The position numbers and the translations under genes were made by a program. Shown in pieces: positions 11,391-58,517 of a stretch of DNA of 64,000 nucleotides. Source of the stretch: Asterias rubens (Eukaryota); assembly GCF_902459465.1 (NCBI RefSeq), contig NC_047062.1, forward strand, positions 17,236,001 through 17,300,000, in the 5' to 3' direction. The notes under the pieces were generated by a model. The model was not told the origin of the DNA, searched no databases, and worked only from the letters and a program-made list of their open reading frames with translations. Position 1 is the first letter of the stretch. Each line of letters begins with the position of its first letter.

Positions 11391-11709
11391 AAAAGAAAAG
11401 AAAAAAAAATTAATATTCTTTATCCCCGATGCAAATTTAACATCTATTAAATCGTTTGCAGTACCCGCTGCTAAAACATAGGATTCGAACTGCCTCTAGC
11501 TACCGGGCAACCTCGGTGGTCTAGTTGGTATGACACTGCTCCAGAATTGCAAAGGTCGTGGGTTCGAATCCCACCCGAGTAAAATGCCTGTGATTTTTTC
11601 CACAGGACTCGGGAAAGTACTGAGTATACAGTGCGACACACATCGGTGTATACGGGTAAAAAAACCAAAACAAAAACCAAAAAAATAATAATAATAATAA
11701 TAATAATAA
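11391..11709 (+). mobile_element. tRNA-mimic 258-bp repeat family, monomer insertion with (TAA)n tail
   Basis: 13-bp TSD tacataggctcga (11378-11390 / 11710-11722). Internal tRNA-like module at 11510-11582 with A box tggtctagttgg and B box ggttcgaatcc. Confidence 0.85.
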
Positions 11710-13660: not shown

Positions 13661-14087
13661 TGCAGAAGGAAACTGCATTGAAACAATTATTGTTCTACTT
13701 TAAGCCACGCCCATTTCAGGCAGGTCTGTATTGCAGTCTTTTCATTGGTCTGGACACCTAAAGAAATTCCTATTCCTCAACACTGTGGATAACATTGTGT
13801 GGACATGCGTAAGTCCACATCAAGTCTCTACATTATGTGGACTTCTCAAGTCCATACTTCGTATGTTAAATCATACAAACTGGCACCAATGGTTACCAGA
13901 ATCCAATAGGAATTACATTCAGCAATTTTATTATTATTTTTTTTTTTTGGGGGGGGGTGTGAAAAAAGGGTTGATTGAACTTGGCTTTCGCATACGCTCT
14001 TCAGAACCACACAATGTGTGAACGTTTGTGTGACTTTCTGTAGAATTACACACAAACATATGCCGCACTTGGAGCTGGAAATAGCGA

Positions 14088-14206
14088 GTTGAAACCAACG
14101 GTTGTTTTCAGAACCAGCCTAACTCATTGGAGATAGTCATACAGGATGTTACCGCAAACCTTTCCATATCTTTCTGATGTCAATACTTTTTATAAAGTCC
14201 AATTGT
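14088..14206 (+). mobile_element. TSD-flanked short retrocopy of the hammerhead-bearing (Penelope-like) repeat
   Basis: 14-bp direct repeat gctggaaatagcga at 14074-14087 and 14207-14220. The interior is nearly identical to 15389-15495. Confidence 0.75.
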
Positions 14207-14759
14207 GCTGGAAATAGCGACAACTTTGGGTGAGTTACAGATGCGGGGTCGTGTGACGTAATTGGATTAACAACAGGATACCGGCTACATAAATTAATCG
14301 ACTGTTTTGAGAATTTACGATATTGTACATAAACGGACAGACCAGCATGATGGAAAAATATTTATGACATTGTGAGTGAAGGAACGGGTCTGAGCGTAGT
14401 TTTTGCTGTAGTCAAACACTGGTTGGGACCTCTAATTTTCTTCGTCCATGTTGAGACTAGGATGGGAAGTAAGGAATGATAAACACATTCTTCGAAAACT
14501 AAAGTCAGTGATCTTCAAATTTCAGCTCGGCAGAGAACAACAACAACAAGCGCGGAGTGCGGATGGATGGGCCAACACGTATCGTAACAATTTGTAAATG
14601 ATGTAGGTACACAATGAAATTGAACCGGAAACAAAATTGATAACCAGGAAAGAGTTCTTGCATTGCTGATGACGTTGAGCTATGGGGAGCTAGGCCAGTC
14701 GGGAACTTTTACTACATATTATAGCTACACTTTCATAAAGAGTTGAAACGAAGACTATC

Positions 14760-16220
14760 ATGGGCTGCAAGAAAACACTCATTTTGTTTGTGTGTTGGAT
14801 TATTTACCTGTGTCTCGGTGCGTTGGCTTTCATCGCAATAGAGAAAGGAAACCTTGCGACGCAGCAGGAGGCACGTGCAGAGTTCAACGAGGCAGTCGCA
14901 GACTTTGCCCGCGAATACTCTTCGTGTGGAGTTACCAGAGACAGTCTGTTGACGTTCATGGTAAACAATGGACGGCACACCCAGACAAGAGGTGTGTTCC
15001 ACTTTAATGTAGATCCCTCGAAGGGGGTTCAAGAAGAATGGTCAATGACTAATGCGTTGGTCTTTACCTCCGAAATTGTTACTACCATAGGTGAGCATTT
15101 AGAAACTTTAATGGTGTCCAGAATAGCATCACACTTTCTCTCTCACTCTAGTAAAGGCTTTCTGATGTCTAAGTAGGATTTGAAACTTTGCATGGTGGAA
15201 ATACGATATGGAAATGGTTGTGGTAACATCATGTATAATGACTTCTATCTCTAATGAGTTGGGGTGGTTCTGAAAAAAACCGTTGGTTTCAACTCGACGT
15301 TTCGATCAGTATGCTTTGATCGTTTTCTGGAGAATACTTCCTCCTTTTCTCCAGAAGACGATCAGAGCATACTGATCGAAACGTCGAGTTGTTTTCAGAA
15401 CCACCCCAACTCATTGGAGATAGTCATACAGGATGTTACCGCAAACCTTTCCATATCTTTCTGATGTCAATACTTTTTATAAAGTCCTATTGTGCGGGGC
15501 AGACATTACACTCTTAAAACGCACATGGCCCAATTTCATAGAGCTGCTCAGCACAAACAAGTTCCACATATTGATCTAGTGTGTCTTCAACGAAAGTAGA
15601 ACAAGAAGATAAGAATGAATAAAAACGAAACTGTTTCCTATTCCTCTTTTAAAGGTCACGGCACGCTGACACCCTACACCGCCAGAGGGCGTCTCGCCTG
15701 CATTTTATACGCCCTCTTCGGCATACCACTCTGCGGCTTCATGCTCGCAGCCGTCGGTGACGCGGCACTCATCCTAGCCGATAAAATCGACGGAGTTTTC
15801 CGAAGGCGTCTCCGACTTGCTCTCCTAGTGAACGCTGCCCGTCTCTTCGTCATTGTATTGGTATTCTGGTCGATTACGGTGACGCTGCCAACGTTGATTT
15901 ACACCAGGACGGAGGGGTGGAACTGGGTCAAGGCACAATACTTCAGCTTCACAGGCATGAGTACAGTCGGCTTCGGAGACGTGAAGGTTAGCCTTCATAG
16001 ATACAAAGACTCAGTATTATTAGACTGGTGCTACAAAGGTGGCACAACCGTGTACTGCTTCCTCTGTCTTGGTATTGTCTCCACCGTCTTTAAGGTTATG
16101 TTTCGGTGGCACAAAAACCACATCCAGCAGACCAGAGCCAGATTCCGAACGTGGAGGCGAAAAAACTGCACTTCTAGAAGACGGTCCTCTAATTTAGCAT
16201 TCTTGAATACTCAGGACTGA
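14760..16220 (+). CDS. K2P channel paralog 3 (298 aa predicted), atypical P1 filter TIGHG
   Basis: Exons 14760-15090 and 15655-16220 (ATAG|gtgagc...aaag|GTCAC). Cap Cys (SSCG), P1 FTSEIVTTIG|HGT, P2 FTGMSTVGFGD. Confidence 0.9.
15172..15458. repeat. Inverted pair of Penelope-like repeat ends forming a long hairpin in the intron of K2P paralog 3
   Basis: The left arm (about 15172-15334) is the reverse complement of the family sequence in the right arm (15347-15458); loop tacttcctcctt. Confidence 0.85.
15349..15388 (+). ncRNA. Minimal type-I hammerhead ribozyme-like motif (U4A variant)
   Basis: CTC-CAGAAGA-C-GATCAG(agcata)CTGATC-GAAA-CG-TC^GAG: 3-bp stem I, 6-bp stem II, palindromic ACGT stem/loop III, GUC triplet. 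The sister copy at 46728 has the canonical CTGAAGA. Confidence 0.6.
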
Positions 16221-25900: not shown

Positions 25901-28900
25901 TTCAACACTCGCAATTGGGACAGTTTGCTCAGCTTTCCAAGGTCAAAGGTTACGTTGGGCCTGCAGGAAAAAACAAAACAACGATAGTGTTTTTTTTAAT
26001 ACAGCACGGAAGGACCACACTGAAAGAGTCTACCAAATACCTTGTCCAGGATTGATCAGAAAACAGTGTACTGAATTCTACATTGGAGAGATAGAAATGG
26101 TCCCACAAGACTAGGTTATTGGAGCACCATGCCCCAGTTTGTCCTTTTCCGAGGGTTCTCAACACATCCGTATAGAATCACCAGGTCATCACACAGACAT
26201 TTCAAAAGTAAAAATCTTAAACAGAAACCCTTGTGATGCTTCAAAAGGGGTGAAGAAGGCAGCTTTCATCAGAACCAACTTTAAGGTTTGGAAATATTTC
26301 AAGTGTTAAAACACCAACTGTATTGTAATGGTGTTTCAGTTTGGGTGAAAAAGATCACAGGGTTTCCAGATTCGGATTCCCTTGTCCATTTGGGAAATGA
26401 TTATACTAATCAGGGTAAGCAGATGCTCATAGTTGTAATTGTCCCCTAGTTTCCTCATTGGGGATCAATTTTACCCTCATCGAGGTAAGGGTTACCAAAC
26501 AGGGTAGGCATATACCTCAAGAGGGAGAGTTGTGGTGCCAAGATGCTCATGATGTTGTTGTCCAATAGTTTCGCATTGGGGATTGGTGATACCCTCATCA
26601 AGGGAGGCCAAATAGGGTAGGAGTATACCCCAATCTGGAGTTTAACTAACCTCTTTGAGAACATTCCTTCCAGCCAGTGTACTTGCAGAACTCTTAAGTC
26701 TGGTAGACACTGTGGGACCTGACTGATGACGGAGGTGGAAGCGTGGCCAAAGTGAAGGTACTGCAGCTGAGGAAGTCTCTTGATTATAGAGTAGATGTCC
26801 CTCATGTAAACGCTTCTAGTAAACTCCATCATCGTGTTGTTGTAAAAATCCTAAAAGATGGATGATTTTCATGGACAACTATAAAGATCATGGACAATTA
26901 TAAAGATAAAGAAAATGGGCAAACACATGGCCTTATAATTAATAATAAGAATAATAATAATAGCGACTTCTTTTATAGCCCTAATATATCCATCACTCAG
27001 TGACGCTCAAGGTGCTTCAATATTCAGTATTTTCCTGCAAGGTATTTTAGAGCTTTGTTTTGAAGTATGAGACCAACATGGTATTATTGATTCTTTTTTG
27101 GTCTTTTTCTTTTTTATCTAAGAGGAAATTGCCTCATTTTAAACAGATGACCAGGTTAAAACAGATATCTCCATGAACAAGTCGCACAAACTAATGATTC
27201 TCAGTGTGATGTACATTGTTTCCGCAAGGTCAAGTAGAGAGAAGTTGAATTCAAAGTTCTTTATTACTATAAGCCTGCTTTGATTGACTTACCAATGCAA
27301 TGGTTCCACGTGCTTGAAAGATTTTGACAGCTTTTGGATAGTCCTTCACTTGTGTACCTTCCAGACTCACGTTCTTCCACTGCAAAATGTAGTAAACAAA
27401 TAAATATATTAATTTTGGTTTTTACCCATACACCGATGTGTGTTAGCACTGTATACTCAGTTCTTTCCCGAGTCCTATGAAAAAATATCACAGGCAAGTT
27501 ACTCGGGTGGGATTCGAACCCACGACCCTTGCAATTCTAGAGCAGTGTCTTACCAACTAGACTACCGAGGTTGCCCGGCAGCTAGAGGCAGTTCGAATCC
27601 TATGTTTTGGCAGCGGGTACCGCAACGATATAATAGATGTTAAATTTGCATCGGGGATAAAGAATATTAATTTTGGTTTTTACCCATACACCGATGTGTG
27701 TTAGCACTGTATACTCAGTACTTTCCCGAGTCCTGTGAAAAAATATCACAGGCATGTTACTCGGGTGGGATTCGAACCCACGACCCTTGCAATTCTAGAG
27801 CAGTGTCTTACCAACTAGACTACCGAGGTTGCCCGGCAGCTAGAGGCAGTTCGAATCCTATGTTTTTGGCAGCGGGTACCGCAACGATATAATAGATGTT
27901 AAATTTAACATCTATTATTAGAATTGCAAGGGTCGTGGGTTCGAATCCCACCCGAGTAACATGCCTGTGATATTTTTTCACAGGACTCGGGAAAGTACTG
28001 AGTATACAGTGCTAACACACATCGGTGTATGGGTAAAAACCAAAATTAATATTCTTTATCCCCGATGCAAATTTAACATCTATTACAAATAAATATAGAT
28101 TAAATTACAGCATTGATTTCTGTGTGTGCTCCATCTTATCTGTTCCTTTCGAAGATGCATACTCATGTTGAGTCTGAGTCCGAGTCTTTAGTGTTGACTT
28201 TGAGTCTGATTCCTTGGTGTCGAGTCCGAGTCCGACTTCTCAGTCTCTAGTCTGAGTCCAGGTCCTCAGTGTCAACTTTGAGTCCGAGTCCTCAGTTGCG
28301 AGTTTCAGTCTGCACCCTCATCTTGATTCTGAGTATCCCACCCTTTACTGTTGACTTTGAGTCTGAGTTTTCAGTGTCAAGTTTCTGTCTGATCCCTAAG
28401 TCTCAATCTCAGTCTGAACCCTCAGTCTCAAGTCCGAGTCCGAGTTTTTAGTGTTGACTTTGAGTTTGAGTCCTCAGTGTAGAGTCTCAGTCGGCACCCT
28501 CATCTTGAGTCTGAGTACCGCCTCTTAAGTGTTGACTTTGACTCCGGATTCTCTCAGTGTCCAGTGTAAGTCTCAAGTTTCAGTCTCAACCCTCAGTCTC
28601 CATGCAGTCTGACTGCTTATAACTTGCTTTCTTTAAAAAACTAAAAAACCCAATGTACAATAATTTTAAAAATGACCAAAGTTTACAAACCAAGCTTTTA
28701 TCTGTAGACAGCTGGTTCCACATTCTGCAAACTAAGCCGACCCTCAATAGGTCACTCGCAGAGAGGTAGTTGAAGATCCTAAGCAGACAGTATTGAGGCA
28801 GTGCACTGATGTGATCACTGCCGTACACACTTGGATCATTGGTAGAGGTTGACGAGGCACCATTGGATGAACGTGTTTTCACCTGAATAGGTCAATAACA

Positions 28901-58045: not shown

Positions 58046-58219
58046 GTGGATCGTTAAATTGAAAACGCAAAACATCATAATTGCTCACTCAGTTGATTTT
58101 CGATGACAGCTTTTAAATTCGCGTAAACTGGAATAACGCGACGTTTAAATTAACCTCTTATATTTTGCCAAAAAAATACCGGGAAATGTTGCATTGTATA
58201 ACAAAACGAAGGTCTAAGT

Positions 58220-58517
58220 GATGTTAAATTTGCATCGGGGATAAAGAATATTAATTTTTGGTTTATACCCATACACCGATGTTTGTTAGCACTGTATACT
58301 AAGTACTTTCCCGAGTCCTGTGAAAAAAATATCACAGGCGTTTTACTCGGGCGGGATTAAAACCCCGGACCCTTGCAATTCTAGAGCAGTGTCTTACCAA
58401 CTAGACTACCGAGGTTACCCGGTAGCTAGAGGCAGTTCAAATCCTATGTTTTGGCAGCGGGTACCGCAACAGTATAAGAGATGCTAAATTTGCATCGGGA
58501 TAAAGAATATTAATTTT
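58220..58517 (-). mobile_element. tRNA-mimic 258-bp repeat family: terminally redundant 1.15-unit insertion
   Basis: The ~40-bp gatgttaaatttgcatcgggg-ataaagaatattaatttt segment is present at both ends. TSD acgaaggtc(g)taagt (58206-58219 / 58518-58532). Confidence 0.85.

Follow-up and report, generated by a model that had tools for sequence, protein, structure and literature searches.

Insertions of Penelope-like elements (PLEs) are recognized by partial tandems, an adjacent inverted and 5'-truncated copy, and a tail of 30-40 bp that is confined to one end (PMC8557442). The transposition cycle of PLEs has been called enigmatic, the one-sided tail and the tandem and inverted structures being ascribed to "still undefined features" (PMC8557442). 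A hammerhead motif is found in the pseudo-LTR of canonical PLEs whose endonuclease is C-terminal, and non-autonomous PLE derivatives with multicopy head-to-tail insertions are known, e.g., MRC1 and the non-autonomous Chlamys elements (PMC8557442). Metazoan non-LTR retrozymes, which are defined by a type I hammerhead, are thought to depend on PLEs (PMC7229834, PMC2770079, bioRxiv 10.64898/2026.07.22.740005). Here, we report that positions 27396-28097 of the window, i.e., the whole 64-kb stretch of Asterias rubens DNA that was analyzed, probably represent a single retrotransposition of a non-autonomous 258-bp repeat via PLE-type target-primed reverse transcription. A single insertion of this kind, with the Penelope-type tandem-plus-inverted architecture, had been claimed in an earlier sequence-only reading of the locus; the claim is now supported by regularities that hold across the repeat family and by an active PLE resident in the same genome. 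The insertion consists of the following parts:

27396-27408, no strand: left TSD copy, ACAAATAAATATA, the final 3 nt of which can be assigned equally to the element start
27406-27663, minus strand: unit 1, covering unit positions 1-258, with the minus strand as RNA sense
27664-27906, minus strand: unit 2, partial, unit positions 1-242, with an extra T within the T-run at position 199
27889-27918, no strand: perfect 30-bp palindrome at the head-to-head arm junction, arms 27889-27903 and 27904-27918, no spacer
27904-27918, plus strand: short 3'-terminal fragment, unit positions 242 to 225, including the shared AAATTT
27919-28085, plus strand: inverted arm, 167 nt, unit positions 134 to 1 and then 258 to 226
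28085-28097, no strand: right TSD copy, 13 bp

The two copies of the 13-bp TSD flank the whole element, and the proposal that one such pair encloses two head-to-tail 258-bp units plus an inverted unit of about 0.65 was borne out, with 1.93 units and an arm of 167 bp. The direct repeat of period 258 at 27406-27906 amounts to 1.9 copies (1.93-1.94 units) with 98% matches, and the outer (left) end of unit 1 is the "tail-less" terminus, unit position 1. Units 1 and 2 differ at four sites, including T4 versus T5 at position 199, and post-insertion change or reverse-transcriptase error must therefore be assumed; the substitutions of unit 1 at positions 57, 72, and 92 are absent elsewhere in the genome. 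Unit 2 terminates in the hexamer AAATTT, which is self-complementary and forms the center of the palindrome, the latter reading unit positions 225-239 in both orientations. A perfect palindrome of 26 bp had been announced for this junction; the palindrome is there, but its real size is 30 bp, with the 26 bp contained within it. The short fragment at 27904-27918 stops at the canonical terminus, and the right arm then skips from unit position 225 to 134. The inverted arm matches the reverse complement of 27631-27797 at all 167 nt (100% identity to unit 2) and closes with a 33-nt tail (28053-28085) at the canonical 3' terminus, so that the right outer end is unit position 226.

The family to which this insertion belongs is young, with about 1,000 copies, many of which are 99-100% alike; an exact 29-mer from the element end occurs 1048 times in the 417.6-Mb genome. 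All family searches used exact patterns, the insertion census comprises 44 parsed insertions, and the unbiased sample was drawn, in chromosome order, from the exact 29-mer matches and numbers 24 independent insertions. Most of the 44 insertions share a fixed end at unit position 222-226, and the opposite end varies across the unit, as expected from 5' truncation. The mode of the TSD is 12 bp, and an exact shared boundary word of at least 8 nt is found in 29 of the 44 insertions, as compared with 3.5% of mismatched-flank controls (n = 2000); the TSD of the window is thus not a product of chance. An inverted arm lies within the same TSD in 11 of the 24 insertions of the unbiased sample (46%), and both arms are enclosed by a TSD of 10-13 bp in all 16 scorable tandem-plus-inverted insertions. 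In 16 of 19 cases, the second arm has its outer end at unit position 1 +/- 9 (P = 4e-17 versus a uniform spread). This terminus reads ...CCAAAATTAATAT| and is followed by unrelated flanks to which it has no microhomology, and it falls 33 nt short of the main terminus (226). Please note that the 33-nt "tail" is present also between tandem units, i.e., in every unit.

The genome also contains arrays of 3 to 12 or more units, with unit-to-unit identity of 100% in many of them (L016, L013, and L021), and arms of 3.8 units (L016) and 4.7 units (L064) are each enclosed by one TSD pair (12-13 bp). Fragments of 18-23 nt that end at the canonical terminus and are joined to arms were found in the window and at L070 and L076, and the arms are in some cases joined by fold-back on a hairpin or palindromic motif of the element. 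Contigs and reads run out into unique flanks at the same pair of termini in DNA runs with three organism labels and in a single RNA run, the loose ends being at 27405/27407, 27628-27630, 28051, and 28087.

An autonomous PLE with RT and GIY-YIG domains is present in this genome and, judging by the sequence of its copies, recently active. There are 118 GIY-YIG matches, many of them within 921-aa open frames that combine RVT_1 with a C-terminal GIY-YIG domain; the copies are about 99% alike and include partial tandems and one inverted piece, and their TSDs are 10-11 bp. No copy of the resident PLE lies within the 64-kb window. The best GIY-YIG match, L031, was rejected as a PLE, as it has short ORFs only and no BLAST match to the PLE reference, and was taken as a putative host-gene exon. 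The 3' end of the PLE reads ...CATCTACCCTATTCATTAT(AT)n and that of the repeat ...AACATCTATTAT(A); the terminal motif CATCTA...ATTAT(A) (about 6-10 nt) is the sole sequence that the two have in common. BLAST of the unit and a tail-motif search over 19 PLE loci revealed no further similarity beyond chance, and the partnership is therefore circumstantial. L049, the single PLE insertion examined among those with an inverted piece, has the full 3' end on both sides. We infer that the PLE is the driver of the repeat.

The order of events might be as follows. Briefly, a staggered cut about 12-13 bp apart would produce the TSD. One nicked strand would prime cDNA synthesis at the canonical 3' terminus (unit position 226), which would give the right arm, and the other nicked strand would use another fixed priming site, unit position 1, which lies 33 nt upstream, and copy about 1.94 units to give the left arm. 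The cDNA ends would then meet and join on the self-complementary AAATTT, leaving the 30-bp palindrome. Snap-back self-copying was considered as the only mechanism and rejected, since the arm without the tail is often the longer of the two (window, L006, and L064). An arm of more than one unit needs a longer-than-unit RNA, a circular RNA that is traversed more than once, or an enzyme that switches repeatedly between unit-length RNAs, and our data are compatible with all three.

Compared with published PLEs, the repeat shows the same frequent 5' truncation, head-to-tail multicopies, and an adjacent inverted 5'-truncated copy in one TSD, and it has a tail-like segment of about 33 nt at one insertion end only and a similar terminal ...ATTAT(A) motif; its TSD size (12-bp mode) is also like that of the resident PLE (10-11 bp). 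It differs in that it has no ORF, no wider 3' similarity to the resident PLE, and no hammerhead motif, and in that it carries a tRNA-like pol III module. The presence of the 33-nt "tail" in every tandem unit makes it only analogous to the published extension, which is found once. The likeness to retrozymes is in the short unit (of the 150-450 bp class), which is non-coding, moderate to low in GC (44%), tandem, dispersed, and TSD-flanked, and whose RNA is also predicted to fold strongly; however, the type I hammerhead was found on neither strand of the repeat, and without it there is no visible basis for self-cleavage to unit length and circle ligation. The schistosome Sm-alpha SINE-like element is similar in its tRNA-derived part and tandem organization (PMC7229834, PMC2770079, bioRxiv 10.64898/2026.07.22.740005).

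Every unit holds the tRNA-like module on the minus strand (Rfam tRNA 48.1 bits against a gathering score of 29; ARAGORN agrees):

27499-27571, minus strand: tRNA-like module of unit 1, with an A-box-like TAGTCTAGTTGG and a perfect B box GGTTCGAATCC
27757-27829, minus strand: tRNA-like module of unit 2, by Rfam and ARAGORN

The module occupies unit positions 166-94, i.e., mid-unit and about 107 nt inside the element, and is followed in each unit by a T6 run 13 nt past its 3' end (in unit 1 at 27480-27485, A6 on the plus strand). Insertions start upstream of the module, their 5' ends clustering at unit positions 1-24 (15/40, P = 1e-6). The unit RNA is predicted to be unusually structured, with an MFE of -88.7 kcal/mol (z = -6.2). 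With the module in mid-unit and no hammerhead, the repeat is neither a canonical SINE nor a retrozyme. No ribozyme was found when Rfam was run on the dimer region at E <= 10 and on the whole window at gathering scores, tRNA being the only match. Rfam also failed on the hammerhead-like CUGAAGA...GAAA motif of the resident PLE, however, so that its negatives for minimal hammerheads weigh little and the absence of the hammerhead rests on the motif search, in which the core CUGANGA (one mismatch allowed) followed by GAAA was not found on either strand of the unit. Read by eye, the unit has CTGA once (sense strand, inside CTGAGTA) and TTGA on neither strand.

In one random-primed RNA run, family reads are on both strands and 81% of them extend into unique flanks, indicating co-transcription with neighboring sequence. 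Neither discrete multimeric or circular transcripts nor pile-ups of read starts or ends were seen in this run. Please note that reads across a back-junction cannot reveal circular RNA, since tandem DNA yields an identical junction.

The sequence-only reading had gone further and taken the template to be of at least trimer length or a circle copied in rolling fashion; this is plausible. Serial template switching between unit-length RNAs would yield identical DNA and fits the locus equally well. One possibility, to which we would give rather less than an even chance, is a long linear multimeric RNA (at least 2-3 units) that came from a genomic tandem array and was copied from both nicks. The arrays of 3 to 12 or more units could be read through, the RNA reads that run into flanks (81%) are in line with such co-transcription, and the left arm here extends over 1.94 units, with arms of 3.8 units at L016 and 4.7 units at L064 within single TSD pairs; a heterogeneous multimer would also allow the T4/T5 difference between units 1 and 2. 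Against it stand two insertions with rare variants. At L064, the T5 variant is present in every unit and in both arms, while the genome has 17 matches with T5 versus 791 with T4, and all T5 matches outside L064 are single copies. At L050, the 82T/93A variant, with 3 genome matches, is likewise found in all units and both arms. No source array with the variants of L064 or L050 exists in the assembly, and iterated copying of a unit-length template is thus favored, at least sometimes. The substitutions of unit 1 are unique to the locus and therefore uninformative on a mixed (heteromultimeric) template, to which they lend no support. The T6 run after every tRNA-like module would, in addition, stop pol III in each unit.

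The template may instead have been about one unit long and copied repeatedly, either as a circular RNA in rolling fashion or by serial switching, in which the enzyme reaches the end of an RNA and resumes at the start site of a further one; we regard this, too, as tentative and below even probability. The rare variants common to all units and arms of L064 and L050 speak for it, although they cannot separate circle from switching, as do the 100% unit identity in many arrays (L016, L013, and L021) and the 18-23-nt fragments (window, L070, and L076), which show re-initiation at the start site. The unit RNA is strongly structured, like viroid-like circles, and animal retrozymes have been proposed to be mobilized by PLEs in rolling-circle fashion (PMC7229834; bioRxiv 10.64898/2026.07.22.740005). 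On the other hand, no hammerhead or other self-cleaving ribozyme was found that would create unit-length ends, the RNA run is free of any pile-up of read starts or ends, and the two units of the window differ at four sites.

A more specific form of repeated copying, which we consider unlikely, is that of a hammerhead-less counterpart of retrozymes, in which a structured RNA of about 258 nt would be copied repeatedly (as a circle or by switching guided by terminal redundancy) by the telomerase-related RT of the PLE. Synthesis would begin at two precise internal starts 33 nt apart, one per nicked strand, and the tRNA-like module would replace the ribozyme as the handle for processing or ligation (RNase P, RNase Z, and tRNA ligase).

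L1 twin priming, reportedly described by Ostertag and Kazazian in 2001, leaves an inversion with junction microhomology or a small duplication in one TSD pair, the 3' ends of both arms facing outwards. Its second priming site lies inside the element at a variable position set by microhomology, and the arms derive from neighboring stretches of a single RNA that do not overlap. If the repeat were an ordinary LINE-dependent SINE inverted in this classical manner, which we consider improbable, then its tRNA-related module, its TSDs and 5' truncation, and the inversion with junction microhomology in one TSD would all be accounted for, and it does resemble tRNA-derived SINEs (SINE2) in its A/B-box tRNA segment, high copy number, TSDs, and 5'-truncated copies. 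However, the tRNA segment of the repeat is central, about 107 nt inside the element and with the T6 terminator after it, and insertions start upstream of it. The element end reads ...AACATCTATTAT(A), with no A-rich, poly(A), microsatellite, or simple-repeat tail, and nothing in it is recognizable, as far as its sequence tells, as a LINE-like tail. Head-to-tail multimers are common, both tandem and inverted insertion forms occur, and inversions at 46% of the unbiased sample are about twice as frequent as in L1. The earlier label of a twin-priming signature holds for the inversion and the small junction duplication in one TSD but is not fully supported in its L1-defined sense: the second arm begins at one fixed site, unit position 1, with no microhomology to the flank, the arms overlap in unit coordinates, and some junctions fold back on hairpins of the element.

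A monomer insertion later reshaped by stepwise tandem duplication and local inversion, or a structure produced by misassembly at a palindrome, is very improbable: the four differences between units 1 and 2 do mean that the array is not brand new, unequal exchange can lengthen arrays of more than one unit, and PLE-type structures are known to trouble assemblies (PMC8557442), but the same architecture with two canonical outer termini and an enclosing TSD recurs at at least 16 independent loci, a sub-unit arm has no internal direct repeat to expand from, inverting part of one copy would not give two outward-facing 3' termini, and all 167 nt of the inverted arm are identical to unit 2.

The insertion lies in an intron, close to the following exon:

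27293-27379, minus strand: host exon of an F-box/LRR gene, with the acceptor AG at 27380-27381

The acceptor reads ...ttttgcag|TGGAAG on the minus strand, and the exon begins at 27379. The distance of about 30 nt to a splice acceptor of the F-box gene, given in the sequence-only reading, is confirmed, the insertion point being 29 nt upstream of the exon. The F-box itself (Pfam F-box-like, E = 3.6e-12) is encoded by a minus-strand exon at 28589-28882, and RNA reads from a close relative cover 27273-27395. An empty allele was not recovered among the joints listed from short-read contigs, which break at the repeat; in one contig, X6, the left flank is covered up to 27395 and is followed by 42 letters unlike the window, which is no more than suggestive of an empty allele. 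The insertion thereby puts a perfect inverted repeat of 167 bp, a potential double-stranded RNA hairpin, 29 nt upstream of the splice acceptor of the F-box gene.

Full-length PLE insertions are long and hard to assemble. The family reported here is short (258 bp), young, and abundant, so that whole events can be read directly, i.e., TSDs, both termini, junctions, and abortive fragments, and this makes it a good natural data set for the integration of the poorly understood PLEs. Four rules emerged: each arm has its own precise terminus, the two lying 33 nt apart; the TSD is 12 bp; fold-back junctions are placed on hairpin or palindromic motifs; and 18-23-nt fragments are marks of renewed initiation at the start site. 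As the family shows, a non-autonomous element of PLE style can lack the hammerhead and bear a tRNA-like pol III unit instead, which blurs the boundary between SINEs and retrozymes. If the hammerhead-less retrozyme reading is true, then the integration rules of PLEs would be written, to the single nucleotide, in about a thousand young insertions.

The compound structure of about 2.6 units that the sequence-only reading had described at 27396-28097 is confirmed by a pair of target-site duplications (TSDs), a direct repeat with a period of 258, a palindrome, and an inverted arm:

27396-27408 and 28085-28097: TSD copies, ACAAATAAATATA, bounding the whole structure
27406-27906: direct repeat, period 258, 1.9 copies, 98% matches
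27889-27903 / 27904-27918: perfect palindrome of 30 bp without spacer
27919-28085: inverted arm of 167 bp, exact reverse complement of 27631-27797
27499-27571 and 27757-27829, minus strand: tRNA-like segments, one per unit (Rfam, ARAGORN)

The unit was numbered 1-258 along the plus strand from 27406, with the minus strand of the left part taken as the "sense" of the element. In these coordinates, the plus strand reads antisense 1 to 258 and then antisense 1 to 242, followed by sense 242 to 225, a jump, sense 134 to 1, and then 258 to 226. AAATTT, its own reverse complement, forms the centre of the palindrome, and the spacer between the 167-bp perfect inverted repeat arms (27631-27797 and 27919-28085) is 121 nt.

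BLAST with the unit located at least 1735 candidate places in the genome (417.6 Mb, 150 contigs), and an exact 29-mer from the element end occurs 1048 times vs 0 for the reversed control. Our census comprises 44 independent insertions that were parsed, i.e., 23 from the best BLAST matches, 19 from 29-mer matches, and the two other family copies in the window; the 29-mer matches, taken along chromosome order (19 of the 44), served as the unbiased sample. An exact word of at least 8 nt is shared at the two boundaries in 29 of the 44 insertions, compared with 3.5% of 2000 controls in which the left flank of one locus was paired with the right flank of another. TSD length has its mode at 12 bp, and some of the sequences are not AT-rich, e.g., CATACTGGGTTC and ATGTCTCAGCTA. 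An inverted arm is present in 11/24 insertions of the unbiased sample, and a 10-13-bp TSD encloses the entire structure in all 16 scorable tandem-plus-inverted insertions. These family-wide counts indicate that the AT-rich TSD in the window is real and that the compound structure is a single insertion, as had been proposed. On chromosome 1, 29-mer matches grouped by eye form 78 clusters, seven with tandem and six with opposed matches. Two loci 5.3 kb apart, L051 (C1:934740) and L052 (C1:940095), have identical flanks, TSD, and tandem-plus-inverted insertion; this pair is a segmental duplication postdating the insertion. The window also holds two older family copies, each just over one unit and about 93% identical to the reference unit: ~11401-11670 (270 bp, minus-strand unit orientation) and ~58215-58517 (303 bp, with a 9-bp TSD, ACGAAGGTC).

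No empty allele was recovered when short-read contigs and joints of the runs were compared with the window. A contig from X6, a DNA run under another organism label, spans 27150-27395 and then continues with 42 letters unlike the window stretch, and the depth at 28093-28133 is about that of the left flank; both would fit an empty site, without being proof of one.

Across the 44 insertions, one terminus is constant, at unit position 222-226, with the sense strand reading ...AACATCTATTAT(A), and the opposite end is variable, a pattern characteristic of 5' truncation during target-primed reverse transcription. The arm ending at position 226 carries a 33-nt terminal segment (258 to 226), termed here the tail. 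In 16 of 19 cases, the terminus of the opposite arm falls at position 1 (±9) of the unit (P = 4e-17 vs a uniform spread) and reads ...CCAAAATTAATAT before passing into flanks with nothing in common among loci; the second start site is therefore fixed and not determined by microhomology. The window insertion obeys this two-terminus rule, with position 1 at its left end and position 226 at its right end, and position-1 ends were found in a few simple insertions too (loci L020 and L074). The 5' ends cluster at unit positions 1-24 (15/40, P = 1e-6), with smaller groups near 160-189, ~80, and 239-242.

DNA alone cannot separate a multimeric RNA, a circular unit, and serial switching between unit-length RNAs as the template. 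A long multimeric RNA transcribed through an array is conceivable if somewhat doubtful, and the same applies to a circular unit copied round and round and serial switching between unit-length RNAs, taken jointly. In favor of the latter two, every one of the four full units at locus L064, and its inverted arm as well, has the rare T5 variant of the T-run at position 199, which is outnumbered in the genome by T4 (17 vs 791 matches); each T5 match outside L064 is a single copy. Similarly, both units and the inverted arm of locus L050 carry an 82T/93A haplotype with three genome matches. That an array should be uniform for a rare variant when the assembly contains no array that could have supplied it implies multiplication of a single unit on at least one occasion. 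However, the two units of the window differ at four sites, namely three genome-unique substitutions inside a 36-nt stretch and, at the fourth site, T4 in unit 1 vs T5 in unit 2, and the RNA run contains no discrete species and has reads on both strands, 81% of the reads over the repeat continuing into unique flanks (one RNA run).

Short microhomologies underlie some of the inner junctions, e.g., AAATTT with the T-run at loci L051 and L070. Another type is the fold-back, where the two arms break off at one shared unit position on a self-complementary element motif; the motifs are AAATTT (window), the T-arm hairpin (L006 and L063), and a hairpin at unit positions 66-86 (L022). Fragments of 18-23 nt ending at the canonical terminus are joined to arms in three places (window, L070, and L076); that of the window is 27904-27918 plus the shared AAATTT. 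They resemble initiation that aborted and then began afresh from the same site. Since the tail-less arm frequently exceeds its partner in length (window, L006, and L064), snap-back copying of a single cDNA is not a full explanation.

An F-box gene on the minus strand, with its F-box exon at 28589-28882 (Pfam F-box-like, E = 3.6e-12), carries the insertion in one of its introns. The distance of the insertion from a splice acceptor of this gene, put at about 30 nt from sequence, was measured as 29 nt upstream of the acceptor of exon 27293-27379, which retains its native pyrimidine tract and AG; this exon is covered by RNA reads of a related organism. In the pre-mRNA, the arms can pair as a perfect hairpin of 167 bp, which could place a long stretch of double-stranded RNA at least 29 nt upstream of the acceptor. 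In the same intron, just downstream of the insertion, is a 26-bp minisatellite (28162-28572, ~15.8 copies, 63% matches, unit like CTCAGTGTCGAGTCTGAGTCCGAGTC).

DNA-run contigs with three organism labels diverge into unique sequence at the same two unit termini, as do RNA reads of the related organism, with loose ends in the window at 27405/27407, 27628-27630, 28051, and 28087, indicating that the family and its termini are common to close relatives. DNA runs X6 and X10, which bear two other organism codes, contain the 258-bp family at very high word depth and ≥95% identity; the unique flanks of the window locus are missing from X10, which again points to a family shared among close relatives.

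The tRNA-like segment scores 48 bits with Rfam tRNA (gathering score 29) and was also called by ARAGORN. It is mid-unit (positions 166 to 94), and a T6 run 13 nt beyond it would limit a pol III transcript to ~100 nt. The unit RNA (27631-27888, minus strand) is strongly structured, its minimum free energy being -88.7 kcal/mol vs -61.9 ± 4.3 in shuffled controls (z = -6.2). The fold of lowest energy pairs the T-arm of the tRNA-like module with the upstream segment AGGAUUCGAACUGCC, and the unit RNA could thus switch between a tRNA-like and an extended fold.

Insertions of Penelope-like elements (PLEs) are highly 5'-truncated, often partial tandems, often with an adjacent inverted 5'-truncated copy, and have a 30-40-bp tail at one end only (PMC8557442). 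The genome has 118 GIY-YIG matches, many inside 921-aa open frames; copies of the resident PLE are ~99% alike, with partial tandems, an inverted piece, and TSDs of 10-11 bp. The TSD and the tandem/inverted architecture, together with this resident PLE, support the Penelope-type insertion suggested in the sequence-only reading. The 3' end of the PLE, ...CATCTACCCTATTCATTAT(AT)n, resembles ...AACATCTATTAT(A) of the repeat, and sequence comparison found no similarity beyond this short terminal motif; the putative partnership therefore rests on architecture, TSD size, and co-activity, not on a shared tail, and the resident PLE fits as a candidate driver of the 258-bp repeat. Animal retrozymes, which are 150-450-bp tandem repeats with a type I hammerhead, presumably depend on PLEs (PMC7229834; bioRxiv 10.64898/2026.07.22.740005), and schistosome Sm-alpha has both a tRNA-derived part and a hammerhead (PMC2770079). 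In contrast, the 258-bp unit has no Rfam ribozyme match at E ≤ 10 and no hammerhead core on either strand, and retrozyme identity is rejected. Two other window repeats (14050-14240 and 15160-15470), which had been flagged from sequence as carrying hammerheads, are a different family, with no similarity to the 921-aa PLE and no Rfam hammerhead at gathering score. A canonical SINE is likewise rejected by the mid-unit position of the tRNA-like module, the T6 run after it, and insertions that start upstream of it. The element is a hammerhead-free, PLE-style non-autonomous repeat with a tRNA-like module, i.e., a variant of a known element type.
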